Assembly: GCA_016748015.1 (NCBI GenBank)
Contig: JAAOMT010000128.1
Coordinates: 1,991,538 to 2,055,537, forward strand
Origin: Geosiphon pyriformis uo1
Taxonomy: Eukaryota; Fungi; Glomeromycota
Length of the DNA stretch: 64,000 nt
Reading direction: 5' to 3'
Shown here: positions 27,130 to 59,076 of the stretch, one piece after another
Layout of the letters: each line of letters begins with the position of its first letter
How positions within the stretch are numbered: the first letter of the stretch is position 1
The notes under the pieces: model-generated
What the model saw: only the letters and a program-made list of their open reading frames with translations
What the model was told of the DNA's origin: nothing
The model's database searches: none
Made by a program: the position numbers and the translations under genes

Positions 27130-27250
27130 TATCATTATTTTTTTATTTGCTTTTAACTAAGTGTGTCGAATCATAATCTACTATTTGGTACATATACATG
27201 CCCAAAATAAACCTGAATCAAGGGCTTTCTACATGTGAACAGCCACCCAG
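27130..27250 (-). mobile_element. Mini-copy of the LINE 3' UTR (about 120 bp)
   Basis: T-rich tail, then ttttaactaagtg...ctttctacatgtgaacagccacccag, matching the copy 3 3' UTR (ttttctacatgtgaccagtcactcag). 11-bp TSD TTTTAATTATT at 27119-27129 and 27251-27261. Confidence 0.78.
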
Positions 27251-27736
27251 TTTTAATTATTAATAGTAAATTTTTAAAATAATTATTTTTTGTCATAAAA
27301 TGTTTCAATTTATTATATAAATATTTAAAAATAAATAATAAATAATAAAAATTTAATATTTATTTTTATATTATTAAAATGATAATTTTAACTGTTATAT
27401 TGCAATAATTTATTAATTAAAATATATTATGAATAAAAACAGTTAAGAAAACATAATAACTTATGTTTTGTAATAAAATATATATTAAATAATTAAGAAA
27501 TTATTTTGTGATTATTTAACATTTTTATGTTTTAAAAAAAATAACCAAAGTACAATTTTAAGTTTTTTTTTTTTGGAAATCAAAAAAAAATTTCAAAATT
27601 TCAAAATTGGCTATTTTGGTTACTCAGATCTTTCAAATTTACAAAAAAGATCATAATTATAAGTTGAAACTTTTCTCTTTTCGGCTACTTATTTCTTGCT
27701 TTTAACATTTCATTTGTGCTGAAATAAGTTGTTTTT

Positions 27737-30700
27737 ATGTCTACTCTAGATGAAAGTCAACAATACTTGGCCACGCTGGCCACGCTTCTAAAGCAAACTA
27801 TTGACCCGCGCACGAGAAAGCAAGGTATAGAATTTTCTCTTTGTTTTGCAATGTTCTTTTTCACTTGATCTTGTAGACTAACACTTTTTATGACTCTCTC
27901 TCTCAGCCGAAGCAGAATTAACAACTGCAGAGCAACAACGGTTAGACTTTCCCATTGCTGTTCTCCAACTTGTTGCGTCTGAAGGCTCTGAACAAATAAT
28001 ACGACAGGCCTCTGCATTATTTTTCAAAAACTATATTAAGAGAAACTGGGTTCCGGTAAGCAATGTTTTAATGATATTACATCGTGTTTAGTAACCTCAA
28101 TAATAATAATGGATTTTTACACTTGATCTAGGAAGATGATTCCAACAAGCTCACGGACGAAAATCGAGAGTGGATCAAGGAAAACATTGTCAATATATTA
28201 GTCGGTGTACCTAATTATCTTCAATATGGACTGATCGATTCGGTGGTTATCATAGCTAAAAATGATTTTCCTGAAAATTGGCCAAATCTGATTAAGGTAG
28301 GTTACATTTTTAAAAGATAAATCCGATATTGCTAGTAATAATCTTCTTTGGTATGTAAATTTAGCAATTGATCAGCAAACTATCAACTGAAGATTTTAGT
28401 CGCAATAACATCATTTTGGAAACGGCACATTCGATATTCAAAAGGCTTGTGGCTAGTTCTACTTGAAATCTTTCATAAATGACATACTAAAATTATTATT
28501 TCTTATAATTAAAAAGATGGCGACATGAATTCCGCTCTGATCCCCTATTCAGCGAAATCAACTATGTGTTAAGTCAGTTTTGCGAGCCATACTTTCAATT
28601 GTTTCAGGCATGATTTCTTTTCTTGAATCTTGAAAAGATTATTGCAAAAAATTTAACTTCTAATTTACCGTCCCAGACAATTGACGTGTTGATCACTCAA
28701 AATTCTGCCAACGGCTCGTTAATCGGCATATTAACCCAGACCCTTCTCTTCTTAACCAAGATTTTTTATGATCTTAATTGTCAAGATTTACCGCCGTTTT
28801 TCGAAGATCATATCGAGGAATGCATGAATATTTTTCATAAATATTTAACTTATTCCAACCCTTTTCTGGAATCTTCGGTGAGCTGTTTTGCGTATTTTCG
28901 TTACAATATTTGCTACCTTATTTGAAGATAACACTCTTATGTTATAATATATTTTCTCAGGATGAGAATGAAGCTGGGCCATTAGAGAAAGTAAAATCTT
29001 CTATTTGCGAGGTTGTATCTCTTTATACCGGAAAATATGAAGATACATTTACTATGCTGCCGAAATTTGTCGAAACTATTTGGACTCTACTTACCACAAC
29101 TAGATTAGAACAAAAATACGATGTCGTGGGTATATTTTAAATTCGTGTTTTCGACAATCTTGTTATTTATTAATGAATTTCTATTTTTTAAGTTGTTATC
29201 TCGAGCCATGGGGTTTTTGACAACGGTTGTAAAGCTAGAAAGATATAGGAATCTCTTTGAAAATACAGAAACTTTAAAGCAATTTTGCGAAAGAATAATT
29301 CTTCCTAATATGTCTCTGAGAGGTTTGTTGCTGATAATAGCGCAATCTGGCCACGCTGGAAGAATTAATCTTTCAAATCTCAAAGCCTCTAATTTGGATT
29401 AACAAACAGCTTCTGATGAAGAATTATTCACAGAAGATCCAATAGAATATATTAGAAGGGATCTCGAAGGCTCGGGTGAGTAGTGTCTTTTTACTTAGAT
29501 GCACTCGTGTATTTATTTGTCGTCTAATTTTCGCACATTTTACATTTTCTTCAGATAGTGATACCCGGCGAAGAGCTGCAACTGACTTCGTCAGAGGCCT
29601 TATGATTCTTTATTTGCAACAAATTACTCAAATTATAGGATCATACATTACACACTATCTTCAGGTTTGAACTCTACAATCAAGTATTCACAAGCCAAAA
29701 ATTTGTCTTTCACTTTAATTTATCACGATATCATGGATAGCGATATAAAGAGAACCCGGCTCTTTGGAAAGAAAAAGATACAGCGATTTATCTTTTGACG
29801 TCGATAGCGGCGCAAGGTTCTGCTACCAAAGTAAGTAATGACATCCGAAAATTGGTTGCTATTTGTGATTTATTGACTTCTAATATCTTTTTGCCATTTC
29901 AGCATGGTGTGACTCAAGTTAACGTGTTTGTAAATGTTGTTGAATGGTTCTCAACCAATGTTCTCCCAGACTTGCAAACACCTGTTGATTCAGAGCCTGC
30001 TGTGTTGAAAGTAGACGCTATCAAGTATTTGTATACCTTTAGAAATCAAGTAAATCTCATTTATTGATACAAGTAACCACTTTAATGTACCAGTCACTTT
30101 TTTTTACTTATCAAATGATTGCTTGCAGATGTCCAAAGACCAGTTGATTGCTGTATTTCCATCACTCATTAAACACTTATCATCCACAAACTACGTCGTC
30201 CATACCTATGGTGCCATCGCAATTGAACGAATCTTATTCATGCGTAAAGACAATGTGATGATGTGAGTACATAAATTTCTCGCATTTCCGATCATCGTGC
30301 TCGAAAGATGTGTTTTTGAAACGACATATCCGCTAATTTTTAAACAGATTTGGGCCCTCAGATATTCAAGAACACGTTCAGATCCTCCTCGTGAGTCTCT
30401 TTCGATTGATTGAAGCTGGGACTACACCTGAGACATTGGCAGAGAATGATTACCTAATGAAAAGTAAATTTTCACTTCTCTATCAGATTTTTGAGGCGAT
30501 TTTTTTCCTAACATAAAAATTTGTATTGGCGTAGCGATAATGCGAGTTATTTTCACATCTCGTGAAAGCATAGCACCTCTGGCACCCGAAGTAATTGGAC
30601 ATTTGAGCAAGATATTAGGGGAAATCAGCAAGAACCCAAGTAACCCTCGATTTAATCATTACGTTTTTGAATCGATTGGTGCTTTAGTTAGGTAGAATAG

Positions 30701-32296
30701 GCTATTCCTCGAACAGAATTATTTTATTATCTACCTGGGTCTTGATAAATAAATACCTTCACTTTCTAAATTCAAGGTTCTGCTGTCCCGATAAGCCTCA
30801 AGCATTGGCTCTCTTTGAAAACTCTCTTTTCCCATCATTTGATTTCATTCTTCGTCAGGACGTAGTAGGTGAGCATCCATTCATTTCACTGTATCATTAT
30901 CTTTTCTTGGTGAATAATTTTATATTTGTTTCAAAGAGTTCATTCCATACATATTTCAAATATTGTCCCAACTACTGGAATGCCATACGGAACATGATCT
31001 GCCTCAAATGTATCGTGACATGCTGCCTGGAATTTTGATGCCGAATATTTGGAATTCACCCGGTAAAAATTAGAATTTGGAAATGCACCTTTCGCGATAA
31101 AGATTGATTATTTATAAATAACAAAATAACAAAACCATTTACAATGTAGGAAATGTTCCTGCGTTGGTTCGATGGCTCCAGGCCTATCTCTATCGTGGGT
31201 CCGCTTCCATAGTTGCCGAAAACCAACTTGTACCAATACTGGGAATCTTTCAAAAATTGCTTGCCTCCAAAGCAAATGATCAATACGGTCTTGAACTACT
31301 TACTACTATAGTAGAACATGTGCCCATGTGAGTTGAAAGATGTGTTGAAATAGATTTCAAGTATCTTCATGAAAAACACTTAATAATATTCCTACTTGCC
31401 TACAATCAAGAGGACATTTAGATCAATACATGCAACCAATATTGACACTCATCTTGAGAAAGATTTCAAGTGTTACCGGCCAAAAAAACAAAAATGAGAA
31501 ATTCATAATGGGCTTTGTGAATTTCTTTTGTTACTTCATTGCTTTGGAGAAAGAAGGCGGTGGTCCTGATTACCTTATATCTGCGACTGAGAATATTCAA
31601 TCTGGGTATTAATCTTAAAGTAATTGTGATAAGCAAAGAAAAGTAAAAATTTTACTAATACGCTTCTTAATAATCTTTAGGTTGTTTTCCCAAATATTAA
31701 ACAACATCATTATTTCGAATTTACAAAAAGTTCAAGGTGAACTGCCACGACATATATGTGCTGTGGCTATGACGCACCTTTTGACGCATAGTAACACGAT
31801 GCTAACGACGGAATTCATTGAGCACTGGTACTATGTATGATTTTTTTGTTCAAATAATTCTTCCGATTTATATTGTAAAGCTTAATTTTTATTCAATTTT
31901 TAGGCCTAATATTTTAACTGCTTTGATCAAACTCTTCGAGGCGCCTGTTGAGATTGACAACGAAGTAAAAACTGAGGAACAATTCTACGATTTTGATCTG
32001 GAAGAAGATCGAGAATTCTCTGCTGCATTTGCCAAGCTAGCAACTGCAAGTAAACCAAAGCAGGATCCAACGGGAGTTACTAATGCAAAATTCTACCTGG
32101 CGCAATCAGTGCAAACTTTGAGTCGAACGCATCCTGGGAAGGTAGTTGTATTTTACATTTACAAATCACTACACTTTAAATCTAACCATAATAATCTTTT
32201 TAGATTTCGGATATGGTTGAAAAGGAAATTCCAACAGAATGTAATTTGTACCTTGGTCAGTATATGGCAGCTGCAGGTCTAGGTTCATTACGTTAG
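27737..32296 (+). CDS. CSE1: Exportin-2 / importin-alpha export receptor, about 21 introns
   Basis: Motifs [123 protein letters not shown]. Confidence 0.98.
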
Positions 32297-35294: not shown

Positions 35295-36713
35295 ATGGTG
35301 AACAACCAACCACCAAGCTTTCAAACGACAGCACCAAACTTGCGCTCGCAAACTATGCAATTCCCAAACAACTTAAACCCTTCCATCCCACCTCAGTCGG
35401 CTCAAACCAGACAAAATCTGCAGGTATGTCTCGCATGTGAAAACGTGATGTTTTACACGTAAAAGACTATTGGAGTGGGTTTTACCAAGAATATAGACTC
35501 TATGGAGAGAGAGGCTACGAAAAATAGAAAGTGGAGGCTATGAACTAAGAGTTTTCAAAGCAACTCTTTTGGTCAAAGTACAGAGGATTATGAAGAAACT
35601 GCTGAAAAAGGGTTGACAAGGGACTGTTGAGCACTTTAGCAAAAGTATAAACGTGTTTAGCAGACAAACGCATAAATTATATTCCTGGAAGCTGGTTCAA
35701 CATTGAATTGAACAAATCAATTGAGACTTGATCAAACATTTTATACTCAAAAATCTCAAGACGCAATTTTTTTGTCTTTTTATTCCTCTTTAAACCCAGT
35801 ATCAGCCTAACACCGAGAAGAGACGACAAAAAATGTCACAAAATTCACAGAGAAAAAATCTTGTGGACAAGGACCCTAAGGCAGACTGTGAAAGGGAAAA
35901 AGTACGTATTTAATTTTCAAGAAACGCGTCTCCGTATTCACTTATCTCTTCATATTTTAAACATTTTTGTCCTCATTTGATAGCATCAACTCAAATCCTT
36001 AATGGAAAAGTATGGATCCAACACAAAAGTCTCGGAAGATTTAGACACCCAGGCAACCTTAATCCGTCGCAAAATCGAAAAGCTGACTGCCCATATCAAA
36101 AGCAAAGTTAGTAATCCTCTCAGCAGCATAATTTTTGGAATTTGCATTTTATTTTTGCACATTTAATCATTTAAATTGCATAATGACACTAGGAATTACA
36201 AGTATCACCAAGACCGCAGCAGCAGCAGCAGCAAACTCCACCTCAACCACAAGTTAAACCAGTTCGAAATCCAGCTGAATTATCCTTATGGCAGAGTTTC
36301 TTCACTTTGCTTTGGATACCTTTCCAGATTCTGTTTCAACTCCTCAGAGTAATATATCGAGCCTTGAACTGGAATCTAATCTTAATTTCACTGTTATTCG
36401 TTGAACTCGGAGTTATTGCTCTTATTTGGGGGTTAGTGATGAGAAATTTTCCTCTACATCGAAATTCCCGTTGCTGTTGCTTCATAAAAAATTTCCTTTT
36501 CCCGTACACAGTGTCCGAAGATCTTCATATAATTCCGCATACTCTGACCCTTATGAGGCAGTTATACACGGAACCTATGGCATAGAACAATCATCCTTAT
36601 GGTCTACGTTATTTTGGTCATCAATGGAAATAATACAAGATTTTTTTGGTGAAGTAATAAGTGGTGGTCGAGGATTTGGCAGCCCCAACTATAGCGGTCA
36701 TGTCCCCATATGA
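35295..36713 (+). CDS. Hypothetical coiled-coil protein with C-terminal transmembrane segment; exons ~35295-35422, 35800-35901, 35984-36106, 36192-36431, 36512-36713
   Basis: Consistent GT-AG spliced frame. Q-rich linker, hydrophobic stretch LILISLLFVELGVIALIWG, tail ending GHVPI*. The start codon is uncertain. Confidence 0.72.
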
Positions 36714-37958
36714 TAATCAGCGAGGTAGAGAGGACGATGAATTCTTGATCTGGGTCATTTTTCAACACATCAATACCCGGGACAATATCAGTGCGCTAAT
36801 TTAATTCCTTCGATAAAGGATAAAGGAGTTATTACTCTTCATAAATTGGATGGCTCACAAGCTTTCCCTCTTCTTTACGATTGTAAATATTGCTTTTCTC
36901 TCTTTGTTGTACTTTTTTTATTACCTTTCTTTAGATTGTTTTTTTACTTGTTTTTTAGTTTTTCCCCTATAATTTTTTTGCACATACACTTTTCCCCGCA
37001 CATACATACCTACACATACACTTTGTCAATTGCACAAACACACAACACACATACACAAGCATTCGCAATGGTTCTCCTCTGTTTTGCTTTTACTGCATTC
37101 TTTTCGACTGCAGTAATTTGAAGCAACAAAGAACATCAACTTTTAAAATTTTAATGTTCGAAATTTACAAATCCCTTGTGCAAGAATCGACAAAAATACA
37201 CCTCTGTTTTTGGAAGAAGTCTCAACGAATCCGTCAAGTGCTGGAGTTGATTAACTAGATTTGCTGTCGTTACGCCAAAGACTCTCACCTACTTACGCAC
37301 GCCGTATATCCATTGGGCTGGCCGGAGGTCAGTTTGGTCAATGAGAGGATATGGCTTTCGCTTCAAGGATTATTTTAAAAACTGAGCTTTTGGATTACTG
37401 GTTAGTCTAGTTATATAAATTCTCCAGATTTTGAAATTTATTTCCAACTAATTTCCTTGGAAATCATGCTTATTTGTTTTTTGAAAATTAGAGAATTGCT
37501 GCTTCGATACCATATTGAGCCTAAGGGAATATTATCTTTCTGTGGAAAAGTTTTCATGCGCACTCCACGATTCAATTTATTTTACTATCCATGGTTATGA
37601 GTAGAAACTGTTGGCTCCTTATCGTGTCTTGGCAACCTATAATTGAGGTTGATCCATCTATACAGCAACATCGGTTTTCATTTCAAATAATCTTTCGCAC
37701 GGATTGCATTTTTCCAATAACAGTAACCCTTTTTTATTTAAATCAATCGCAAATAAATTTGCATAAAGAAGCATTTTGCTTCTGTTTCTCTTTGGTGATT
37801 AATTTTAATTATTTTCGTGAGGTATCGTGGTCACAATGATCGGCTTTTTAGTAATATTTGCTCAGATCATGATTTACATTATTAAAGATCTGAATATCGA
37901 TTGATAAATCCCTTGTATCTTGTGTGTGTATATCACAAGTATAATAAGATAGAAGACC

Positions 37959-38797: not shown

Positions 38798-40336
38798 TTA
38801 TAACTTCCCAAATATTTTATCTATTTCTCTTAAACCAAATACGTATTCTTCATTGGTATTTTTTACTGTTTGTGATTGCTCAATATTTTGATCTTTTTCA
38901 TTTGGTAGCCTTTCTTCTTCAAAATTACATATATCTTTTGGGTTATCTACATTGTCCTTCAGCTCAAATGTCTCTTTTTTTGGATTTGTAGGGATTTTCA
39001 CCTCAGTAGATTTTTTTATGTTTGGTGATTTGTCTAATTGTTCTATTTCTTTTACTAGGGAAGTATCCGGTGCAATGTGCATATGATGCTTCAGTTTCAC
39101 TAAATCCACTATTAAAGAGTTAATAGGAGTCGGTATCCCATATTTTTGACCCAATCTTACAATATATCCATTAACATATTGAATGTCAGTTAACCCACCA
39201 TTTTGTATTCGATGGACCATTGGCGACCAATGTGACGGCTTCTCTCGGCATTCTTTATACACAGCATCAATTAAGCGCCTTATGCGCCATGTATTGAATT
39301 GAGGAAGCCCGATAGCTTGACGATGAGACTCCAACACACAAGAACATTCTTCGCAAATCGCTTGAATTAGACGGTTTGCAGGTGGACGATCACATAGGCC
39401 TTCATAGTTGACGTCAAAAATTGTTGATAGGGGATGTAAGCAACAGTCAACCGCGAGCTGCGTTAACATGAGTTTCTGCAGCTCAGAGAAGCTAACATGT
39501 TTTACATTTAGCTCCCATACTTGATCAAGCGCCCTTATGGTTTGGTTTACATTATGAGCTCGTATTTTGTTCAAGTCCTCGTCTTCGGAAAATACAACAT
39601 GGTCTGTTATTCTTATTATTGTTTTTGACCTATTATATAACGGTAGCTGGTTGAAAACTAATGGCTCATGGGAGGTGTATTGCACTTTTTCTTGCGATAT
39701 TTTAGGCGGTAAAGGTGAACCATATGATTTTGCTTTGGATTTTTCTGCTGATTTTTTTGTAATATCGCTAAAATTTTTGCTGTCAGCCAATGTAGGAAAA
39801 GCCAAGTATAATTCACCTTTGTTATTCTTCAAATCGACATGGTAATCTCCTTTTGAATAGACTTGATGCGTCAATTTTCCTAACAAGAAATTTGGCCTGG
39901 TAGCTTCGTCAACAAAGAATCCATTCAGTAATTCTTCATAAACGCCCATCCCTTCAGTCAACAGCACAATAGTAGTTTGTGGTCCCATTCTATGAAACAA
40001 ACGTTTCATTATATTGCGTACAGAGTAAGGCGCGATGGTAATTATCAGATTCTGAATAAATTTATTAGGCGTAACAGGGGCTTTGAGAAAATGAGCCTCT
40101 AGCGTATCTTCCACATCGTGAACATTAAGGTGTTCACAACTGAACTGGTAAGCGGGTCTGTTGACACCATCATGGTTCTTCAGTGTTATCGTTTTGTTAC
40201 GTCTGACGAATACTTTGACCGCTTCGTAGTCTTTTACCAATAATGTAACTTCATGTCGAAGTTTCTTTAAGTGATGGGCAAGAAAGTTTCCGGTAGCGGT
40301 AGACCCAAGCACGTGAAAGCGTTGCATCGTTGACAT
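38798..40336 (-). CDS. Ketopantoate reductase (PanE/ApbA)-like protein, single exon, catalytic motifs degenerate
   Basis: FHVLGSTATG (Rossmann), TTIVLLTEGMG, QLAVDCCLHPLS, SPMVHRI..GGLTDIQYVNGYIVRLGQKYGIPTPIN. First ATG at 40336. Confidence 0.9.
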   Translation of the reverse strand: MSTMQRFHVLGSTATGNFLAHHLKKLRHEVTLLVKDYEAVKVFVRRNKTITLKNHDGVNRPAYQFSCEHLNVHDVEDTLEAHFLKAPVTPNKFIQNLIITIAPYSVRNIMKRLFHRMGPQTTIVLLTEGMGVYEELLNGFFVDEATRPNFLLGKLTHQVYSKGDYHVDLKNNKGELYLAFPTLADSKNFSDITKKSAEKSKAKSYGSPLPPKISQEKVQYTSHEPLVFNQLPLYNRSKTIIRITDHVVFSEDEDLNKIRAHNVNQTIRALDQVWELNVKHVSFSELQKLMLTQLAVDCCLHPLSTIFDVNYEGLCDRPPANRLIQAICEECSCVLESHRQAIGLPQFNTWRIRRLIDAVYKECREKPSHWSPMVHRIQNGGLTDIQYVNGYIVRLGQKYGIPTPINSLIVDLVKLKHHMHIAPDTSLVKEIEQLDKSPNIKKSTEVKIPTNPKKETFELKDNVDNPKDICNFEEERLPNEKDQNIEQSQTVKNTNEEYVFGLREIDKIFGKL

Positions 40337-40482
40337 GGGAAGACAGTTTTGATCCACTTCGCAAGCATAATAAATTTATTTTCTGAGGATTGCAAAAAAT
40401 TTAATTTTGCAGATCTACATCTATGGTGATCAATACAAATATGAGTTTCGACCAATCTGTATCACCTTTTATTGGATCCAAG

Positions 40483-44912: not shown

Positions 44913-47217
44913 TTAAAATTTTTTGGAACAAAAGCAAAAATGTTTTAATAAACTTTCTCCCGCCGTGATTTTTTCCTGCTCTATTCTTTTCCTACATATT
45001 CCCTCCCATTCATTTTTGTAACTAGATATTTGTGTCACCACAATATCTTGATATTGCTCGTTAATGATGCTGTTATGGCTACCTGTAAATTTGAGCTTTG
45101 CAATTGGATAGGATTTTACATTGGCTACAACAGAATAAATTTGTGAATCTTTCTTGGATGGGGGCAGATAATATCCCGAGATGTAAGCTAGATCGCCATA
45201 TTTGAATTCTGCAGGTGCTGAGGTATTGGGATGATTTGAATTGAAATAAAATTTCTGACAAACTTGTCCTACTCCTATAGACTCTATTTTCCTATTCATG
45301 TACTCAGTGGCAAGCTCAAGAATTTTGTTGATTATTCTCAAGTCATCAACTGATGTATTGTTCAACATAGTGTACTTGATGCACGGACAAAACTCGGAAG
45401 GTATGTGAATGCTATTACAAGTTCTTGTAGGTTCGATTGGATTCAAAAGTATATCCCCATATGTTTGAGCTGTAGTTTTGGTATTATGACGACCCTCGAA
45501 AAAGTTTGAAGGTTCCTTCAGAGCCTTTGAAATATCGATCAAATTTGTGTTGTTTTTACTTTTACCGAAAGCCAGATAAAGTAAAGTCATATGGAGATCC
45601 AAATGTGAAGTAAGTTTGTTTTGATTAACCAAAAATCCAGGTCGGTGAGAATCTGCCAGAGATTTGGGTAGGATAATATGTAACGGTGGTTGATGGTGAT
45701 GTATACTACCTTCGTATGTGGAAACTTCAGATCCATAGTGCATCCCATGATCCGATAAAATAACGATAACGCTTTTTTGATAGGAAATTGAGTTAAAATA
45801 AATTTATGACAAATTGATAGCCAAATTGATTTAATAAAACCTCATACCTATTCGGCTTCAAAAATGGTTGCTTGCCTTCTTTCCCTCTTAACAATTCCGT
45901 GAATAATTCCACCATTGAATCATCTAAACTTACAAGCTTTGTATCCGGCGAATGAGTATCCATTAAGGTGACAGTCGCAAATCTCTTGTACCCTTCTCCA
46001 TTCTCATTTGAACCATTGTAAGTTTGTAAAAATTGTTTTAAATAATCAAATTGTGCTTGGTAGACAGCCTTTTGACCCATGCAAAAGGGGGACGCCACTA
46101 TCATCCCATCTATCGTAAGGGAATCATATTGCGAATCTAGTCCTTGTCTTAACTTACACGTTCGGCCAAATTCTTGATCCTTGAATAGTTGAGCAGTATC
46201 ACACATTGATACATGAGGAAATTGATGATGCCCTGGCATTTTATCACGAGCTTTCTGATAGAAATAAGTGATCGCCCCATCCGCATAACCCCTATATCCA
46301 AATTCCCACCAACCACCACATTCACCGTCCGAATGCATTGTTACGAAGCCTTGCCTTTCGAACAATTCCCAGAGCCAAGTTCCTTGAGCATTTTTTTTTT
46401 CCGAATATAAGTAATCCTTTGATTGTCCGGAATAAATGAAGGCTTTATTTGGAGGTGAGTTAACTCCAAGTACATTATAACGGTTGAATGAAAAAGTCTC
46501 ATGCGTCCCATTCGTATGACTGTCAAGATCTTTGAAAAACGCAATGGTTTTTGGAAATTCTTCATTGAAATGTTCTCTAGAAACGGCATCGAGTAAAAGC
46601 AAGACAACGTCATCAACTAATGGAGCTTGATCTTTTAAAACACTATTTTGGGGAATTGGAAATTTCATATGATTTTTATTATCTTTGATGGGTTCACGAG
46701 TCAGAAAGTTGTTTTCATTCCCACATTTGATCAACACATATTCTTCTGTGAATTTCAAAGGACCGTTCTTGATTTGATCCCATAATTGGAACTTGTACAT
46801 TGATGGAAAATGATAGTCGAAAGGGATATCACAATCAACCTTGATTAATTGTTCTCCAGTCAATTGATCATGGTCGATATGAACAAAGGTTTTACCTGGT
46901 TCAATATCGATTACAGTGTCGTCTAGTGTCAAATTTTTCCAAGATGGAAGTTCACATATGCCGTTGCCACCAAGCATTTTTTCATATTCTATTTCGTCAT
47001 GCACATGGTTCAAAAAATATATTCCGAATATTAAAAAAAGAACTGTGACTGCTAGCAAAACTGTCAGGGGTTTTGGATTTCTCGTTAACTTTATCCCGCA
47101 TAACTTTAACCCACAAACTGTAAAGGGGGCGGAAGGTGAATTAAGCGGCCCATAGTTGAAAGAAGGTCGGTTCAACCAAACCCAAATGCGGTTAAGAAAA
47201 CTGACGATTCTGGCCAT
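44913..47217 (-). CDS. DUF229-like alkaline phosphatase/sulfatase-fold type II membrane protein, one intron (~45773-45847)
   Basis: N-terminal TM (LTVLLAVTVLFLIFGIYFL); motifs LLDAVSREHF..FPKT, YNVLGVNSPPN, MDTH, ILSDHGMHYG, NQNKLTSHLDLHMTL, RTC...IPSEFCPC. Confidence 0.85.
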
Positions 47218-48922
47218 ACTCTCAACTTCTATTCTTTAATATTTAAAAATGTATAACTGACTCTCTGAAATAAGCTACCCTTTTTTTAGGCTTGAAAAAG
47301 TACGGGAGCTCATGTTTGAAACTATTTTTGGATATTACATTTTAAACTTATAATCATGTGCTATTTTATAGAAGAAAAAGTTTTTATTAAATTAATTTGT
47401 TTGATTAAAATAAATTTTGTTATACTTTATTATTTTAATTATACATTAACCATTTTATATTTATGACTTAATTATTAACTTAATTAATAATTTAATTATG
47501 GCCTTTTTTTATAAAATTGCAAAAACTTGCTTTTATAGTTTATTAAAAAAATTTTATCCTTAATATTAATTAAAATTGCTGTTAAAGATTATAACAGATT
47601 ATATTTTAACTATTTGTAATAAAAAAAACCTTTTAATTCTTAAAAACATATTTATTTTTATAATTAATTTTATTTTGAAAATAGTAAAAAAATAATTAAT
47701 ATATGTTGTTATTTAAGCCAAAAATTGAATTAAAAATTATTATAGTATTAATTAAATAATTATATTATAATATAAAAATAGTTAAAAATAATATAATAAT
47801 TAAAAATAATATAAAACAACATAAAATAATTTAAAATAATAAACTATAATTAAATATATTATATTTTCTTAAAATAATTTATATTATTAAAAATGCTGTA
47901 TATATATATTTTAAATTAAATTAAAAATTAAAATAAATTAAAATAAACTAATTAAATATTTAATTTAAAATAAAAATTTAATTTAAATTTAATTCTATTA
48001 ATATAAGTAATAAAATTAAATTTTATTTTAACTAATAATATTTTAATTAATTTAATTATATATATTATGTAAATTTCTGTAAAACAAATATTTTTATATT
48101 ATATTACTCTTTATTAATTGTTAAAAATAATTTCAAATAAATCAATTTTATTTTAAATAAATATTTTAAATTTTTTATTTAATTTTAAGTTTAAAAACTA
48201 TTTTATTATTTTAAAAAATTGAATTTATAAACGTTTTTTATTATTAATAATTAATAATATTACTTATATAATAAATAAAAAATTATTAAAAATAATATGT
48301 TTAAAAGATTATATTAAAAATTACAATATATTAAATATTAAAAAATATATTAAATTTTAAGTTAATAATTATTTAAAATTAAAATAATAATATATATTGT
48401 GTTAATATTTTTTTAAAGATTATTGATTAATATAATCAAATATTAAAAGCTCTAATACAAAAAATTATTATTGTTTATTAATATTATATATTATATATTT
48501 AATAATTATATTCGAATTTTTGTCTTATATATAAGTATAAAATTTAAATACTTAAATATTTTAAAAATTAATTTTATAAATATAAAAACAAAATTAAATA
48601 ATAAATATAAATAAATTACACATATAAAAATTATTTTACTTAATATTTTATGTATAATTTATAAATAAAAAAACAAATATGTATTTGGTTTTTTTAATAT
48701 TTTTATTTAATTTAAAATACTTATAATTTTTTAATCTAATAATAACAAAGAATTTGTAACAAAAATTATTAATAAAAAATGAAAAATAATTTGGTTTATT
48801 GAATTATTATTTATAAATTATAAATATTGTATATTTTTAAAATTAAAATTATTTAATTTATATTTTATATAAAAATAATAAATACACAAATTTATAATAT
48901 TATTAAACAATTTTTTTATTAA

Positions 48923-49013
48923 TTTTTTTTATTTTTTATTTTTTTACAGAAACATACAAGAGAATCCAACTAAATGTGACTCACGCGCTTATTACATGTG
49001 ACCGGCCACTCGA
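48923..49013 (-). mobile_element. Mini-copy of the LINE 3' UTR (about 90 bp; lacks the last ~30 nt before the tail)
   Basis: Poly(T), then ...tgtgactcacgcgcttattacatgtgaccggccactcga. CpGs are retained. Weak candidate TSD TATTAAT. Confidence 0.8.
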
Positions 49014-49532
49014 TATTAATTAATTTTTAATTAAGTCTTATAAAATAATTTATAAAAACTTATTTAATTTTAATAATTATTATATTAATATACAGAAAAT
49101 TTTTTATAATATTAATACACAAAAAATTTAAGAAAAAAATAAATATTAATTTTAATTACTTGAATTTTTTATTATTATAAATATAGTTTAATTATTACTT
49201 ATTATAATAGAATTGTATAAAATTTTAAAATAAGCATAATTTATGCTTTTTATATATTTAATCAATTAAGTTAATCAAAACAATACTATAAATTTATATT
49301 ATACAAATATTATTACAAAATTTAAAAAACACTAAAAATAAAAAACATTAAAACTAAATTTAATTAAAATACTATAACTAAATTTGAATTTAAGAGCATT
49401 TATATTAAAATCACAAAATAACAAATTATTAATATTATATAATATCAAATTATTAATAATTATTAAATTTTAAGTTTTATAAAAAGTTTTAATTTAATAT
49501 TTAGCAACCAAATATTTAATCTGTTATAAATA

Positions 49533-52500
49533 TTTTTTTTATTAAGTTTTACAAGTATAATCCAATTATTACCTAAAAACAAACAATTAAAAAAAAATTT
49601 AGATTAAGTATAACTTATGCTTTTTCTACATGTAATTAGCAACTTAAACCAATTAAAACAACATTATATATTTATTTCACTTATTACAAAAAAATCTCAC
49701 ATAAAACCAAAATACAAATTAGTTAAAAGAGAGTATAATCTAAAACAAACATATATATTCAACTTGATACCAAAATTATAAATTATCTTGAAAGTCTATA
49801 AAGATAACAACTTTAAAACAAACAAAACAGCTGATTTATCACAAGACAGGAGATCATATTTTTTATAATGTGCTTTTAAATATGTGTTTAATAACCAAAT
49901 AGCAACTCTATAGCTCTTGGCAAAACTTCTGACCAAATTAATAACTATTGCATTATTATTAAATTTAATACTCAATAAGTGCATTGTTTTAACCACTTAT
50001 TTCTTTAATACAAAGTCTTTGGCCAATAATATATATAAGCAACCAGAAAATTTTGTCTTATGTAAGAATTAAATTACTTCATAATTAGCAACATAAGTGC
50101 TTAGCAAATTAATCTACTTTTGGATAATGTTTAAGATTAGATCTTTTTTAGTACAATTATTATAGATATATAAAAATATATAATTAAAGTTCTTAATTAG
50201 TTTACACTAAATGTATAATATACTAAAATAATTTAAGTTATACAGTTTTTTTCTTTTGGCCACAAATAAATAGTAGTACAGAGCTTTTATAAAATAGGAT
50301 TGAAATGCTATAAAAGTAGAGCTGATAAAACCAGATCTAATACAACTATTAGAATACTATATACTAAAAGTCTTTTGTATATCAAAGAAATTACAAAGTA
50401 TTATATCTACAGTACTATTAATACATTTGAATTCCCAGTTAACAAAATTAACAACATTAAAAAACCACTTAACAAAATAATAAACATTTCCAGAAACCAG
50501 TCTTTTTTTAATAACAAAAAAATAGTGCAGTATCTTAACAGATATAGTAAAACCAGATATAATAGTTGTATTGGCAAAAAAGTTTGTGTATTTATTATTA
50601 ATAATTTTAAAGTAACTCTTAATTTTATTTCAGTTAATTAATAAATTTTTTAATACAATAGTTTGATAAACATGTTCTTTTTCAATCCAGTATTTATTAC
50701 AAAAGTTGAAACTAATACATTTTTTATTTAAAGTACATATATCTAATAATGCTTGATTATCTGTAAATAATATAATCAAGCTAAACATAAGAATGTATTT
50801 TAGTACAAACACAATAGTCTGCAGTTTCACCATAGTTGAAAAAAACAAGCCACTTATTTTAATTCTAATATTTATATTAATGTTTAAAAAATACACAGCT
50901 ACACTACTATAAGCATTAACAGAACCAAAGTTCTTGGCTAAACCATTTATATAAATAACTATTTCTTTTGTCCTATTTCTTAACAAGCATTTTTTGACAA
51001 ATTTAAAGTTATATGGTTGGCCAGCAAGTATGAGATAGAAAGCTAGAATACTACAGCTAATTAGGCCATCATTCTTAATAAATATAACAAGTAAGCTAAA
51101 TCAACCAAAAATAAGATCTTTAAGATTAAGTTTTTTTTATTTGCAAAATGTGTTCCATGTAAAGCAAACTTCATGATGGTTCAGAAGTTGGTTAGCAAAA
51201 ACAATACTGAATCTCTTTAAAGATTTTACCATGTCAATATAATAATCTAAACTTAAGACATCAACAACAGCAATACTACTATCAGCCCAAAAAATATTTA
51301 GGAAATTGTTCTTTAAAAACAAACCACATAATACTAAAATATTAATTTCACCTGTCAAAAAACAGTTTATCAAATTGATTAACAATATAACTAAAAAATT
51401 AAGAGGATGCCAAGATATTTAGCTGAAAGTCTGTAAATTTATAATTTTATGTTTGAATAATTTGCCAAAAATCTTCTTTGAATTAGCAAAAATAACCAAA
51501 TTAGCCACCAAATTTTCAGTTTGCATTTATCCAAAAGACTTGAGATTATATAATTCAAGATGGGAAATAGCTTTATTAGGAAAGTCTTTAAACAAATTGG
51601 TCTTAAGCTTTAATTTTTTTCTTAGTAATCTGTTCTATTTCTTATATATATTTATTAATATATAATTAAATTATAGCTTGTTATTACTAGTAAAATTTTA
51701 GCTATTAATTAGCATAAAATTACTTTTTTAATTTTTATTATTAATTAGTATATATTATTATTATTTCAATTATCACTTATTATTTAATCAAATTATCAAT
51801 TATTATTATTCAATTACTAACTTAATTTGTACCATAGAAATTAAGATAATCAAATTACACAATACTCTGAACTATTTAATATTCAAAAATTCGTCGAAAT
51901 TAGCAGAAATTGGCCGAAATAATTAATAGTTTGTAGAAATAATTTGTAATTTGCCAAAATGTATTTTTAGTTTGCTAAAATTAGAGCAAAAAGAAAAGTA
52001 CAAATTCAAAGACTAGTACTACAACAAGTTGTATAAAAAAAGAGCTTCTTTTTTCAAAAAAATGTATTTTACTATAGTATCTTATCTTATTTTTAAATAT
52101 TTTAATTAGAACAAATCACTTTTTATACATTCTTACAAAATCAAATAAAAATTAAAATATTCAAAAACCAAATCTTTAATTATTATACTTAAAACTTTTG
52201 AAACCCAATTAATATTTTGAAATCGATAGCTACTAATTTCAATAATTTGTTAGTAATTCCAGACCTGGATAGAAAATATTTCTCTTAACAGAATTCTATT
52301 TCTTTTATATTTCTTTTATTTATTTTTTTCTTTCTTTTCTTATTATAATTATCAGAGTAGCTTACAAATAAAATTCTTGTAGAAAAGTTGACTTTCACAG
52401 CAAAATAACTACACATTTTTAGTGAGTTTTTAAATAAGCAATTTCTGGAAAAAAGTTGATGTTTACTACAATATAACTATATAAAATAACTGGCACAAAA

Positions 52501-55500
52501 TTGGTCATTCTATTTATAAGCCCAGCAGTTCAAATTATAAGAGATAATTTAAAGATAAATTCAGTTATCAAAGGTTCAACTACTTCCAGAAAATGCAAAT
52601 TCACAACAAATAAATATTAACAACATTTAAAAAAAGAGACCAAAAATCTTTAGTAATACTGTAATTAACAATAAACTAAAAAACTACAGATATTAGATAC
52701 AAAAATTGTTTATTTGACATAGTCTTCTTTAAAACCAGATTCATAAAAAATCTAACATCTGATAAGCTTTGACAAGACTCAATTTGGAAAGATCATTTGT
52801 AAACAAAAAAATGTTCAAGTATCTATAAGATTTACTCTTTTTTGCTATCAAAATATTAAATCTACTTATTAATAAATAGGGAATTTTTACTTTTTAATTA
52901 ATAGATATGACAACTATTTTTTCAATGTTAATTGAAATGTCATTAATTTCAAAAAATTTGTTAGCAATATTTAAGATGTATTATGTAACAAATATGTCAT
53001 TTTCAATCCAAATTGTATTATTCACAAAAGCTTCTGTTGTCAAAAAAGATGTCTTGCCACCTCTAAGATTCTATTTGCTAGTTTTTATAATAAATTTTGA
53101 ATTCAATCTATAATCAAACAAACTGTTATGTTTTTTAATTTTACAAAGCAAAGAATTATAAAAAATTTTCTACAGCAGTAATAAAAAGACTTTTTTTTAA
53201 TTCAAATTATCATGTACAATATACTTATTTATAAGTCCAAAATCTGTTATTATTTAATTAACTCTATTATTGTAAATGTTTTCAAAAAACTGAATAAAAT
53301 AAAAACACATCTTGATCTTATTTAAACTATTTTACAAATAGTACCACCTAACAGAATTGTATATTTTGCATATATCTTAAAGAACCAATTACAACTCTCT
53401 GTTTTTTTTCAATACATTTTCAATTACAAAATTAATGGCAAAAATTGAAGTCTAAGTAAATGTTTTCTTTAGAACTGAAAAATTATTACTATATAAAACA
53501 TCAAATTTACTACAAACTAAAAAAATTATATCTAAAAAAATCTTAAATAGAATTCTATAAGCTGTTTTAATTAAAGTTATTGGTCTGATATTTGTTAGTA
53601 TTTTTTTTCAATTATATAATTTTAGTATTATAGAAATTCAAGCCTTTTTCTACTGTATGAAAACTATATTTAACACTAAATTCACATTAAAAATATCCAA
53701 TAAATTTTTTAAAATCTGTTTATTTTCATGTTTTTAAAGCTTATTAAAAATACCAGAAAGGCTAATGGCTTTATTATTAGGCAGATTTTTGATTACTTGT
53801 AGAAATTTTTAAACTTAATATTATTCATAATTTTTAAGAATACACAATTATTAAAATAGTTTAGAGAAGTATATTATCTGAACTATTAATTAGACTAAGT
53901 GCTAAGTATTACATGTTTTCTTGTCTATTTTTTTATAATAGTATTGATTATAGACTTGATTTCACAAGACTTCAGAACCAGATTGTCATTTACTATTAAA
54001 TAGTCAAGTATTATTTTCTAAAATAGTTGTTTCAAAACACTTTTAATTATGTGCTCTTTATTAAAACAAAAATTTTCTATGTATTTTTCTATTATCTTTC
54101 TAATAAAATTATTTTTAACAACTTTAAATTCATAATATTTGAATTTGCAATATTTTTTTTTGACTCTTAACAGATAGCACAGAATTTTTTCCAATTTTTT
54201 GCTATTATTAACCAAAATATTTATTTTGGAGATCTTTTTTTTATTAATAACAATTCAAATATTAATAAAATAAATAGTCTTAAAATTTTTATTTGAATTT
54301 AAATCCTTAATGATTTTGGCCACTAACAGCTTTAGCTTAAAGAACTTAATGATTGTATGTTTTATAAACACTTAAAATTACTGAATTAAAGTTTAGAAAA
54401 AATCTTATTAATAAAGTTTACTACTATCTTTTTCAAAATCAACTATATTGTATCTAAATTACTATGATCTTTTATATTATTGAACCTAGCTGTCTTATTC
54501 AAAACTGTACTTAAAAAACATTTCTTAAAATATGACTACTTAATAATCTTAGCACTTTTGATTTTGAACTTCTATCTATTCTTATTAGTCTGTTTATAAA
54601 CATTATTAAGACAAGTATTTAAGAAATTATTCAAACTAATTACAACTAAAATAGTTTTGTGATTAGTATCAAAAAAATTAGCAATAATATTAATTCTATA
54701 ACCAGTAACTATAAATGCCAGGTTTTAATTTACAAAAATAAAATCTATGACCATTTTACTACTCTTAGAATTGTTCTAAGTAAGAGCTTTAGCAAATAGA
54801 TATCTATTAAATAAGTTAACCAAATTCAAATCCAAACAAAACTTAAAACTCATACTTTTCTTAAAATTGTTTTTATTAAAATTTTCATTTAATACTATAA
54901 AAATACTGGAATTAACTGTTTTAGCAATGAAAGAATTAACTTTAGACACTTGGTCAAACCTTGTCTCTACAGATATACCAGTATATAAATCTAAAATTGT
55001 AACCAAAATTTTGTCTTTAAAGAGAAGTCTTACTAAAATAACATGACCAGAAATTTTTTTTACTTTAAAAACATATCAAATTAAAGAATTATTTATAACA
55101 ACAGTCATTTCAGCACCAAAAAAACTCTTATTCAGGCCAGTTGTGAAAATTCATACTCTATTAAACTTATTTATAATCTATGATCTAACACTAGATCTTA
55201 ACTTTGTTTCCATAATAATAGAAACTATATTATCTAAACTTATATGCCAATAAACAATGTCTTTCTGTTTTGCAAAAACATTAATACTCCAAACATTATA
55301 TATAATAAATCTTTATACCAAGTTATTTATTAAGATAATAAGATTGTTAAAAAGCCTAAACCAAAACACAACTAATCTAATCTTACCAAAACCAAATTAA
55401 CAAAAACTTTAAGAGCAACTATTTATCTTAGTGGTTAAAATTTTTAATTTATTTAAACTAAATTAGAAGTCTGATCAATTAAAACTAAAAGAAAAGGGAC

Positions 55501-57277
55501 AGACAATATAAATGTGTTATTTAAAATTATATCTAATTCTAAATTTGAGTTTGAAAGTACAAACACAATAAAAAAGAGAAATTGAAAAATAAGTGCCAAA
55601 AATACCAAATCTACAAAGCTTAATTTTTTTACAATACTAAATACTTGATCTGGTAAAAGCTCCAAGAAGTGTTTTAAAAAGACCAAATGAGCATTCAAAG
55701 AAAAATTATTTGGTAAAGTAGAAAAAAATTTTCTATTGAAATCTAAAGCACCAAAAAAAAAACTAGAACCAAAACCAAAGAGCAAACTGTTAGAAATAAA
55801 AGCCACTAAGATTATTTGTGCTTATAATTTGCCACCAAAAGCAGCAGAATGAGAGATAAAAACATATTTTTTGGTGTACAATTTGGCTAATTGGAGACAA
55901 TTTTCATTCAAAATAATTTTCTTAAATACTTTTATAGACAAAAATATGAGAGAACTAGAAACATTATATTTAAAAAAAAAATATCCAAAACACTCACACT
56001 TTTTACAACAAATCAGATCTAATTTGGTCCAAGAAAATTTAACATCACCAAAAATTGGTTTTGTGCAAAAAACAGATTTTAGTAATTTATCTAATTTAAA
56101 ACCTATAACAATACAATAAACACTATTGCTATTCTTAAATGATTTATTGACAACACATGTTTTTTTACCAGTTTTTTTAACAAAAATATTAAAATCATAA
56201 ACAGTTGTTTTTACTGACAAGGTAAATAAGAGTGCTTTAAATCAATTTTTAAACATCTAAATATCTTGATCTCTTATAGTTTTGGCCACATATATTAAAT
56301 TTTTTCTGATTAGAAATAACTATTTTGAAGCCAATTAATTTGCTTAACTTAATTTAGCAAACTTCATTATAGTTTTTTGCCATATTCTAATGAGCTAAAT
56401 TTTAATTAACAAAATTTAACCAAACTTGGATACTACAACAACAATCATTTTTTTTGGCATGTCTATAAATTTTTTTTTAATTATTATAGTTTAATCTAAG
56501 CATCTTTTTTGTCTTTTGACATTATTGTTTACAATAATCTTTTTGTTTTTAGCCAATAATATAGTTTTCTTTATATTTTTTTTAGATGTAAATGTTGCTT
56601 AAATAATCTCTTTAAATTTTGAAAAAGTAGTTGTCTTCTCTAAAATTATTAACTAATGAAAAAATTTTTCTAACCATCTAAGTTTTTGTCATAACTAATT
56701 TGCTTTCTACTGCAAACAGATTGATATTAAGAGCAAAAGATTTTTTGATAAGTACTTCAAACTGAGTTTTAATAATTTTTAAATTAATTTACTTTCTGTT
56801 GAAAGAGATATTAAAAAAGAAAGAGAGAAGTCTTTTGTTTTCATTTATGCTATAATCAATTGAGCCAATAGAAAAACCACAAACCAGACTAGTATTAATT
56901 CTCTTAGTTTTAAAGATATTTGCTGTTAAATCAAGAAAAAAACTACTACTAATATCAAATAAGACATTATCATCTTTATTATTATCAAATTTACTATCTA
57001 TATTCAAATATATGCTACTGTTAGCACCAGATTTAATTAAAAAGATATCTTTTTTATTTTCAGAATAATTAATATTATCAACTGAAATCTTTTTTTTTTG
57101 GGAAAATGAATTTTCAATAGAACTATGAAGAATTTCTTTAAACACCTTTTTTTAAACATAATACCATCTAAGACAGTCATTAAGTCCACTACAAAAAAAG
57201 TTATTTGCTTAAGAAATATTTGTAAAAAATAACAAAAAAAAATAAAAAACTTTTTTTCAAAAATATGTTCTTTTTAT
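49533..57277 (-). mobile_element. LINE copy 4, heavily AT-decayed, slightly 5'-truncated, nested in ghost B
   Basis: Poly(T) at 49533-49540. TSD TTATAAATA at 49524-49532 and 57278-57286. ORF1 remnants 55.3-57.15 kb; APE, RT and RNase H remnants (IYINGL for VYTDGS, FTDNQALL). Confidence 0.93.
51682..52658. mobile_element. 977-bp insertion in LINE copy 4, probably a solo LTR
   Basis: It interrupts ORF2, which resumes in register. Terminal inverted 8-mers TATTACTA...TAGTAATA may be decayed TG...CA ends. 4-bp TSD TTGT/CTGT (copy 3 has CTGT at this site). No coding remnant seen. Confidence 0.7.
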
Positions 57278-58965
57278 TTATAAATAAATATATTATGTAT
57301 AATATTAATAATATCTATAATAACTTTTAAATTATTAATAAATATTTTAATAGTCTTTAAAAACCAATTTTTTAAAACAAAACTTTTAATAATAATTATA
57401 TATAAATAATTATTAGTTTTTATATTAAGTAATAGTTAAATAACCAAAAAATTTATAACTGATTAAACAAAAAATTATTATTATTTAATTATAGCATTAA
57501 TAATAATTTTTTTTATAATAAAATTAAATTTATACAAAAAAGTATGATTATAATTTTTTAACAAATTACAATATAAATAGATAATACTTAAATATAAAAT
57601 ATTATACAGTTTTTTTTGAAACAACTAATAATTATTTGTAAAAAGCTTTTATAAATAAAAATAAAAACAAAAAAAAACAAAAACCAAGCTAATTAAATCA
57701 ATATATATATATCTATTTAAGTATTATATTATTATAATATAAATAAAATCAAAATTACAAGCCAAAAATTTATTTACGAATTTTTTGTATTTAGATTTTT
57801 AATTAACAAAACTAATAAAATTAAACAAATTTTTAATAAAATAACAAATATTTCAAAAACAAATTAGTTTTTAATAACTAAATAATATTTACAACTATTA
57901 AAACACAAAATAAAAAGTGAATTTATAAAAACATCTATAATTATATTTATATAATTATTATTAAAGATATTAAAATAATTTTTAATTTTATTTTAGCAAA
58001 CCAATAAAGTTTTATTTATAATAATAATAATATTAATATAACTATGTTTTATTTAGTATTTGTTATAAAAACTAAGACTAATAATAATTAAATATAAAAT
58101 ACATATATTTAAAAAAGCTTAATTATTTAAATTAACTTATATTTCTTATTAAAATATAATTTAAAATTAAAACTATTATTTGTAATTCAGCAAATATAAA
58201 TAAAAAAAGACTATAAATATTTAGGTTTATTTTAAGACCAATATCTAAAAAGTAAGTAAAAATACTAATAGCAATATTATAAAAGTCCAAATTTTTAATT
58301 AAATTATTAATATATATAATAATATAAATTGTTTAATATATTTAAAATTAAAATCTTCTTTTTTAAAAAAAAGCATAAAGTCAATTTTTTGCCAAAAATA
58401 ACCACAGCAAAAATATTTTTTTTGTTTAAAAATTGCCAGTTATATTAACCAAAAAATTGTTTATAAGATTAATAAACAACTTAATAAATCCACAGTAAAT
58501 ATTATAATAATTAATTTGTAATTTATAAATTTATTCTTTTATAATTAAAAAGTTTTTTAAAAATATTATTTACATTAATGCAAACAATCAAATTGGCCAA
58601 TTTTTTTTGATTAAATTTGTTTAAAAGATTTAAAATTATATAACAAAGAATAATAAATTGGTTTATTAAAAATTTTTTTAAAAAGCTTAGTCTTAAACTT
58701 TAATTTTTTTTAATAATCGAGTTTTATTTAATGTAAATACTTTTAAATACAAAACTAAATTAAATTTTATAATTAATAATAAGTTATAAAACTGCCAAAA
58801 CCAAATATAAAAACTATTTATTTAAGATAACTTTTTTTAAAATCATATTTGCAAAAAACTTAATATTAAAATATATTTTTTCAAATTAAGCTTTAATTAA
58901 CAAAAAATTTCAAAATATTTGTGTATTTTTTTTTAACAATAAAAATAAATGTTTTACTAATATTT

Positions 58966-59076
58966 TTTATTATTAACGTTTTATGAGTGCAGCCCAATTA
59001 CTATCTAGTATACAGAGTCAAAACTATGGACCCCAGTTAGACGCAATTCACGCATTTACTACATGTGACCAGTCAC
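58966..59076 (-). mobile_element. Mini-copy of the LINE 3' UTR (111 bp) inserted into ghost B
   Basis: gagtgcagcccaattactatctag...cgcaattcacgcatttactacatgtgaccagtcac. Perfect 10-bp TSD ACTAATATTT at 58956-58965 and 59077-59086. Confidence 0.9.

Follow-up and report, generated by a model that had tools for sequence, protein, structure and literature searches.

Short retrocopies of the LINE 3' UTR in the window

The 64,000-nt window analyzed here, a stretch of contig JAAOMT010000128.1 from the fungus Geosiphon pyriformis uo1, carries LINE copies on its minus strand together with three short copies of the LINE 3' untranslated region (UTR), here named minis (Table 1). According to Pfam, the LINE encodes RVT_1 and RNase H domains and a weak RRM (ORF1 being weakly RRM-like), and it has a conserved and structured 3' UTR of approximately 117 nt. 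The ORF2 stop codon occupies columns 14-16 of our alignment (A2) in 69 of 69 long copies. In the copy at 15424-15554 the stop codon (TAA) is found at 15541-15543, and the position equivalent to the start of the minis is 15524. The host fungal genome is AT-rich.

Table 1. LINE 3' modules, minis and target site duplications (TSDs) in the window
Feature	Position	Strand	Remarks
Third LINE copy, 3' module	2..129	-	cut by window start
Second long LINE copy, 3' module	7090..7221	-	element extends to ~14000
Long LINE copy, ORF2 end and 3' UTR module	15424..15554	-	element extends to ~22100
Mini 1 TSD, tail side	27119..27129	.	11 bp, AATAATTAAAA in element sense
Mini 1	27130..27250	-	unit start CTGGGTGG at 27250, then A-rich tail
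Mini 1 TSD, other copy	27251..27261	.	11 bp; adjoins 5' end of unit
Mini 2 TSD, tail side	48917..48924	.	8 bp, AATTAATA in element sense
Mini 2	48925..49013	-	start TCGAGTGG at 49013; first ~62 nt of unit, then A-rich tail
Mini 2 TSD, other copy	49014..49021	.	8 bp
Older LINE fragment, AT-decayed 3' module	49548..49671	-	continues upstream; not a mini
Mini 3 TSD, tail side	58956..58965	.	10 bp, AAATATTAGT in element sense
Mini 3	58966..59076	-	start GTGACTGG at 59076, A-rich tail
Mini 3 TSD, other copy	59077..59086	.	10 bp

Read in minus-strand sense, the minis can be aligned with the final ~100 nt of the long LINE copies. The initial annotation had described three tailed retrocopies of the LINE 3' UTR sharing a 5' boundary within about 4 nt, with clear TSDs of 10-11 bp for two of them. 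The copies and their tails were confirmed at these sites, the 5' ends fall on columns 33, 33 and 37 (mini 3 starting 4 nt downstream of the modal position), and TSDs were found for all three. The copies had also been noted to differ in sequence, and they are indeed only 60-70% alike. Mini 1 is old (~63% identity to long copies) and carries an A-to-G ('GGG') variant, while mini 2 lacks the 3' half of the domain, including the 3' arm of the helix that closes it.

Genome-wide distribution of 5' ends

Three starts out of three make a small sample, and the truncation points of LINE families have been described as variable (PMC3747384). Random 5' truncation combined with coincidence, or long copies split by nested insertions or deletions, could mimic a common boundary in a single window. 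The genome-wide census argues otherwise. Its length-blind part consists of the first 60 exact matches to a 17-nt core in contig order, which correspond to 59 independent copies. Among these, 38 reach past 2 kb and nine are AT-flanked truncations scattered over 2 kb, and four share one 3-nt start window (Poisson P = 1.4e-9; P = 1.9e-5 when tested against the local density).

Exhaustive pattern listings contribute ~27 further independent copies to the census, the counts based on them coming from short listings read by eye. The 390 exact-core copies include 16 places (12 independent events) that start at column 33 ± 1, as against approximately four starts in the next 22 nt upstream (P = 1e-8). 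The modal start is column 33, where the sequence opens with YYGRGTGGCTGGTCAC, 17 nt past the ORF2 stop codon. The GGG variant was fully listed, and ~21 of its 46 copies start at this site. Column 33 is T or C, matching the LINE, in 19 of the 21 GGG minis, yet the C that most long copies have at column 32 is found in only one of these minis. As the match to the LINE is present at column 33 and lost at column 32, the start is fixed to a single nucleotide. Such starts account for 4-7% of tail copies overall and for about half of the GGG variant.

The proposal of the initial annotation that the boundary is non-random thus holds in a stronger form than stated, with one-nucleotide precision in dozens of copies, and the genome-wide check of 5' junctions, carried out as a pattern census, revealed a peak and not a flat distribution. 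Among the matches listed, columns 14-15, 21 and 24-25 also seem to mark minor 5' ends; these were recognized by eye and post hoc, and as peaks they are only suggestive. Scans for ends farther upstream were swamped by AT runs within the LINE. A metagenome scan with the core returned four chance matches, the module being present in none.

Chance truncation is ruled out by the census, and nested insertion or deletion by the TSDs, which border the minis themselves. In addition, LINE sequence does not continue upstream of minis L005, L035 and L075. An artefact of either kind is extremely improbable. With a 5' end this precise, some step other than random truncation must act on LINE 3' UTRs, the candidates being RNA cleavage, arrested decay and a structure-triggered cDNA stop.

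Insertion hallmarks and origin of the minis

TSDs adjoin the unit and the tail in six of the nine minis examined, and among minis they are 6-11 bp in size. The minis are target-primed retrocopies of the 3' UTR minus its first 16 nt, with an A-rich tail and TSDs. Young minis are closest to different long LINE subfamilies: mini L017 shares 92% identity with long copies L006 and L003, and mini L035 shares 94% with long copy L019. Judging from these relationships, the minis arose repeatedly from different LINE subfamilies, which makes the site more probably a recurrent hot spot than the mark of a single SINE lineage.

The alternative is a self-propagating SINE-like family, in which master minis would be transcribed and mobilized by the LINE in trans and the common 5' end would simply be inherited. 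It draws on the A-to-G change at the fourth nucleotide (GGGTGG), which is present in 7 of 12 independent exact-core minis and in just one of the 83 long copies (Fisher P = 5e-7), an enrichment of about 40-fold. The share of minis among GGG copies, given above, and the sequence ACACACT near the 3' end, common to mini 1 and mini L043, point the same way. However, ~20 long LINE copies also bear GGG, so that it can be a marker of a LINE subfamily, and the young GAG-type minis are nearest to the different long subfamilies, not to one another. Mini L088b, which has a private internal deletion, is single-copy, the genome pattern search having recovered only itself, and four minis with common flanks turned out to be one insertion copied within a 300-bp low-copy repeat.

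Nor does the unit look like a Pol III gene. It has no tRNA, 5S or 7SL head, and ARAGORN found no tRNA genes in the window. By eye, only the first 6 of the 11 A-box positions fit and a B box is absent; the minis also begin with pyrimidines. T-runs terminate Pol III transcription, and the unit contains an internal one. Of the features that define a SINE, the tail common with the partner LINE is thus found, and the internal Pol III promoter or head is not. The established non-autonomous family suggested by the initial annotation is accordingly improbable as the main cause, given the diverse subfamilies, the single-copy L088b and the missing Pol III head, although a partial lineage component survives in the A-to-G variant.

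RNA structure at the boundary

The ~100-nt 3' domain is closed by a 6-bp helix in which columns 34-39 pair with columns 126-131, beside the tail, and column 33 is the nucleotide immediately 5' of it. Over 83 copies this helix is 89.5% paired. Its covariation is modest: a CG/UA exchange is clear only at pair 34/131, and the variation consists mostly of transitions giving G.U or A.C. Many double changes are seen in the hairpin at columns 68-115.

Two folds are predicted. The full UTR would form a four-way junction, with column 33 at the 5' stem-loop junction of its first hairpin. Within a mini, a new closing helix with the bases beside the tail would produce a self-contained three-way junction, and young minis are predicted to fold with this terminal helix. 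Across the 83 copies the two folds reach 93-94% pairing, far more than the shuffled and slid controls (25-46% of cells paired when the partners were slid). The boundary had been placed at the 5' arm of a helix pairing next to the poly(A) tail; such a helix is predicted, with column 33 just outside it, while mini 2, as noted, has no 3' arm for it to pair with.

How the 5' end could be set

The most likely mechanism, which we put forward tentatively, is that the RNA template already ends at column 33 and that the reverse transcriptase (RT) runs off. The LINE RNA would have acquired this 5' end before reverse transcription, either by an endonuclease cleaving at the hairpin loop junction or by the refolded domain arresting 5'-to-3' decay, perhaps with RT bound. 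As in LINEs of the 'stringent' type, the RT would then recognize the 3' domain, and it would copy the shortened template to its end. If any transcript containing the domain were processed likewise, minis could also seed further minis. Xrn1-type exonucleases are not normally stopped by simple helices, so that decay arrest would need tertiary structure or a bound protein. Some observations weigh against an RNA end of this kind. Mini 2 has a tail and TSD although it is without the 3' strand of the closing helix, covariation in that helix is modest, and young mini L017 starts 2 nt farther upstream, with GG microhomology to the target, which means that the template there extended beyond column 33.

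A stop on the RT side is less probable, though a serious contender. Here intact RNA would be copied until the 3' end of the cDNA snaps onto the cDNA beside the tail, the RNase H of the element having removed the RNA at the tail-side strand, or until RT meets a protein bound to the first hairpin; the end would then be joined to the target. The LINE does encode an RNase H domain, the boundary is the exact point at which the cDNA completes the complement of helix 34-39/126-131, and snap-back would place the cDNA 3' end beside the target junction. Such a stop also predicts minor ends at the 5' bases of helices, where the by-eye, post hoc minor ends seem to fall, and the GG microhomology at the L017 5' junction is in line with it. 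On the other hand, 19 of 21 ends at column 33, 1 nt past the helix, are tighter than pausing followed by microhomology joining predicts. RNA structures usually block RT at the 3' side of helices, not at the 5' side. Finally, the mini-enriched A-to-G change turns an A-U pair into G.U in the RNA helix, and into a destabilizing C.A mismatch in the cDNA snap-back helix. Since pairing is kept in the RNA and disturbed in the cDNA, a cause at the RNA level is favored. Sequence alone cannot tell cDNA fold-back from nuclease processing or arrested decay.

As to which activity could generate an RNA end, self-cleavage, one of the causes raised in the initial annotation, is unsupported for the known ribozyme classes. 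Rfam gave no match at the gathering score, nor for two modules searched with E values of up to 10, and within that search covariance-model matches to HDV-like, hatchet, hammerhead, twister and pistol ribozymes were all absent. The hammerhead and HDV-like cores fail as well: there is no NUH triplet before the site for a hammerhead (the bases are GGC or GGU), and in an HDV-like arrangement the partner of P1, formed by the first 7 nt, would be 3'-terminal, leaving no room for P1.1, P4 and P2. Other processing sites were rejected on similar grounds. An IRE1-type loop (CNG|NNGN) would have U at position 6 and be cut 3 nt further in, splice sites are absent from the boundary, and for an RT 'toeprint' caused by a ribosome at the stop codon the distance of 17 nt would be ~5 nt too long, the reaction moreover being nuclear.

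It is a long shot, but the domain may itself be a site-specific RNA-cleaving element, or recruit one, that cuts at its own 5' edge and releases a polyadenylated mini-RNA bearing the RT signal, which is then copied into the genome. Such an element could be a new class of self-cleaving ribozyme or a nuclease substrate resembling those that yield tRNA halves. It would offer a processing-defined, promoter-less route to SINE-like elements.

Implications and relation to known systems

The minis can be regarded as a natural experiment on the minimal RNA accepted by the LINE RT, namely columns 33-133 plus a tail. That tail-only retrocopies exist at all fits with this segment being sufficient for retrotransposition. 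Should the template RNA indeed end at column 33, tail-only non-autonomous retroposons would be able to originate and persist independently of a promoter, which would be relevant to the first capture of SINE tails.

Exonuclease-resistant RNAs yield the subgenomic RNAs of flaviviruses. There too (reviewed in PMC11499389) a structured 3' UTR domain defines, to a single nucleotide, where a stable 3' fragment begins, as the domain described here would. The LINE fragment differs in that it would become DNA and that its domain has no demonstrated ring-forming pseudoknot.

The non-LTR retrotransposons R2, RTE and L1Tc carry HDV-like ribozymes at their 5' ends, where an RNA structure likewise sets a precise 5' end at its own 5' edge, whereas the mini domain has no Rfam match and its first 7 nt pair at the extreme 3' end. 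The R2 SIDEs are short internally deleted elements of Drosophila that keep the R2 5' end with its ribozyme. Like the minis, they are non-autonomous and keep the LINE 3' UTR needed for target-primed reverse transcription; the minis, however, start inside the 3' UTR, whereas SIDEs retain the 5' end and arise by internal deletion. With 5'-truncated ('dead-on-arrival') LINE copies the minis share colinearity with the LINE 3' end, an A-rich tail, TSDs and an origin through the LINE machinery, yet their ends peak at one nucleotide ~100 nt from the tail and are not spread.

The tail-sharing SINEs of 'stringent'-type LINEs, such as eel UnaSINE1 with its partner UnaL2, are likewise short non-coding units with a structured LINE 3' end, and in such LINEs this structure is taken as the RT recognition signal (PMC3747384). 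The 3' UTR of the present LINE is likewise conserved and structured, and its 83 copies show compensatory changes. In contrast to UnaSINE1-type SINEs, the minis consist of the tail domain alone, without a Pol III-type head or body, and most of them appear to arise anew from LINE transcripts, not from master SINE genes.

Short LINE-tail copies in the window

The window belongs to an assembly of 128 Mb in 792 contigs and is very AT-rich, with 12-17% GC between genes and 35-40% in genes and repeats. It holds two host genes, one of which, the DUF229 ORF, is probably split by an intron, along with LINE copies of various lengths. The three short copies of the LINE 3' UTR tail (minis) described in the initial annotation are real, with TSD-delimited limits almost identical to those first proposed, and they carry the hallmarks of retrocopies. 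In element sense they read YYGRGTGGCTGGTCACATGTAG... and then an A-rich tail, which in mini 2 follows just the initial ~62 nt of the unit. As had also been noted, they differ in sequence (pairwise identity 60-70%); they are old copies. Since mini density here (3 per 64 kb) is far above that implied by the genome average, AT-rich regions of repeat decay may be where minis accumulate. Positions 48000-60000, at 12-22% GC, contain two minis and one decayed LINE end.

Features of the window, predicted helices of the LINE 3' UTR (alignment columns) and further loci fetched around LINE tail copies (L numbers)
Feature	Position	Strand	Remarks
Mini 1	27130-27250	-	Exact 11-bp TSD adjoining both sides
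Mini 2	48925-49013	-	Exact 8-bp TSD adjoining both sides
Mini 3	58966-59076	-	Exact 10-bp TSD adjoining both sides
Long non-LTR retrotransposon copies (n=2)	3' ends at 7090 and 15424	-	RVT_1 and RNase H domains, weak RRM-like ORF1
Third LINE 3' end	2-129	-	
AT-decayed LINE 3' end	49548-49671	-	
Ketopantoate reductase-like ORF (host)	38798-40357	-	ApbA and ApbA_C domains
DUF229 ORF (host)	44913-47217	-	In two pieces
Outer helix of full UTR	columns 15-18/126-129 and 21-24/119-122		
First hairpin	columns 25-33/39-47		CG/UA/GU exchange at pair 32/40
Second hairpin	columns 48-52/60-64		
Long hairpin	columns 68-115		Strong covariation
Mini in low-copy repeat	L075:1850-2150 (G000:C527:7445-7745)		Repeat at least 300 bp, also at four to five other places (C656, C629, C640, C504); 82-92% identity among copies
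Two GGG-type minis	L088:1618-1700 and L088:1992-2070		Same orientation, 370 bp apart; shortened internal regions, (ATT)n microsatellite between
Two other repeat families	L019:1400-1610, L039:1900-2050, L060 and L078 (whole loci)		Last ~150 nt LINE-like
Paired LINE tails	L018, L026 (cores ~1505 and ~1880)	+ and -	Tail-to-tail, ~180 nt apart, two unrelated loci
Inverted partial copy	L070:90-300	-	First ~20 nt of a short tail copy (…CACGTGATCAACCACTTGA), ~150 nt downstream; MITE-like inverted-repeat look

Anatomy and folding of the LINE 3' end

In 69 of 69 long copies examined, a TAG or TAA lies exactly 27 nt 5' of a 17-nt probe in the 3' UTR, CTGGTCAC (the core), and closes frames open for up to 656 codons. 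This codon ends ORF2 and occupies columns 14-16 of an 83-copy alignment of the LINE 3' module; the 3' UTR therefore spans column 17 to about column 133, followed by the tail. Minis, starting at column 33, are thus missing 16 nt at the 5' end of the UTR. A near-invariant GTCACRTG (columns 45-52; window 15505-15512 in a long copy) matches the E-box/CDEI type (RTCACRTG) and makes up the second hairpin's stem; a DNA-level role, e.g., as a promoter element, is putative.

Two alternative folds of the alignment are each 93-94% paired vs. 25-46% for slid controls, and none of 500 shuffles reached the observed pairing. The full UTR is predicted to form a four-way junction, and minis begin at the point where the 5' arm of the first hairpin's stem meets its loop. 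When the first 32 columns are removed, the released strand forms helices 34-39/126-131, with a CG/UA exchange at pair 34/131, and 43-46/120-123, and a closed three-way junction results with the 5' end 1 nt from its closing helix. The helix initially suggested between the boundary and the sequence beside the poly(A) thus holds for the mini conformation. Folded one sequence at a time, young minis and the matching long-copy segment took exactly the three-way shape (z-scores -0.8 to -2.6).

Genome-wide distribution of 5' ends

The core has 390 exact matches in the genome and 1357 at ≤1 mismatch, and the reversed core, used as a control, has none; in metagenomes the core gave chance matches only. 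The first 60 exact matches by contig order, a length-blind sample, represent 59 independent copies. Most of these (38/59) run past the 2 kb fetched, six are AT-flanked truncations at 340-1500 nt, three end 27-60 nt above the boundary and none ends at 70-340 nt. Four (L035 = L066, L043, L075 and L088) begin inside one 3-nt window (P = 1.4e-9 vs. the sample's own truncation density, P = 1.9e-5 vs. local density). A similarity-ranked sample gave two further minis among 30.

A listing of all exact core matches with a 10-mer of A and T only ≤30 nt upstream returned 37 places: 15 long copies whose AT run is internal to the LINE, 16 places (12 independent events) starting at column 33 ± 1, two starting 2-5 nt inside the boundary and ~4 starting within 22 nt above it. 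All 46 genome copies with GGGTRG (A-to-G at the fourth nucleotide of the mini unit; the GGG variant) were read by eye from a short pattern listing and comprise ~21 minis at the common site, ~20 long copies and four short copies at -7 to -12. Column 33 is T or C, matching the LINE, in 19 of the 21 minis, and column 32 is C in one of 21 vs. most long copies; these two columns pin the start to a single nucleotide. With overlaps and duplicates accounted for, minis number at least 30 independent copies. The shared 5' boundary is thus non-random, as first proposed: 5' ends peak at column 33 and do not follow a smooth truncation distribution.

Lineage or recurrent insertion

An established non-autonomous family had been offered as one explanation. 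The closest relatives of young minis are, however, long copies of different subfamilies (L017 is nearest to L006 and L003 at 92% identity, L035 to L019 at 94%), L088b, a mini marked by a deletion of its own, occurs once in the genome, and minis have no tRNA, 5S or 7SL head. These observations argue instead for a site hit repeatedly, and such recurrence indicates that some mechanism operates on the domain the copies share. A single finding points toward a lineage instead: the A-to-G change occurs in 7/12 independent exact-core minis vs. 1/83 long copies (P = 5e-7), and minis make up half of the GGG copies. As ~20 long GGG copies exist, the variant may mark a LINE subfamily producing minis very efficiently. 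A 300-bp low-copy repeat carries a single insertion that accounts for four minis with identical flanks; the L075 mini is an old insertion that was subsequently copied along with a larger unit.

Other loci share the LINE tail. The LINE-like part of two other repeat families is the ORF2 end plus the UTR module, their upstream sequence being unrelated and partly GC-rich; these could be further LINE families or non-autonomous partners using the LINE tail. Tail-to-tail pairs may reflect insertion beside pre-existing A-rich tails.

Origin of the fixed 5' end

We favor a template RNA already ending at column 33. Cleavage at the hairpin loop junction would generate this end or, alternatively, 5'-3' decay would be arrested at the refolded, perhaps RT-bound, 3' domain; run-off reverse transcription would then copy the shortened template. 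The main rival is a stop on the cDNA side: either the cDNA, once RNase H has acted, would fold back onto its own start, or a bound protein would act as a roadblock. Helix 5' bases are the predicted ends under both models, and minor 5' ends are suggested at columns 14-15, 21 and 24-25 (read by eye and assigned post hoc). The RNA-end model is preferred because the start is precise to one nucleotide, because the enriched A-to-G variant leaves a G.U pair in RNA but would put a C.A mismatch into a cDNA helix, and because any domain-containing transcript could also yield minis. Self-cleavage was raised initially; a known ribozyme is unsupported, neither minis nor module having an Rfam match, and a new ribozyme class acting at column 33 is conceivable.

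Comparison with known systems

A narrow literature search turned up no account of LINE tail copies whose 5' ends are fixed at the edge of a structure, and a transposable-element survey of these fungi mentions neither truncation nor non-autonomous LINE derivatives (PMC11952901); in a search of this scope, the lack of a match does not establish novelty. Minis have the same origin as 5'-truncated LINE copies but lack their variable truncation point. Compared with stringent-type LINE/SINE pairs (PMC3747384), they act like the tail of such a pair, without any SINE head.
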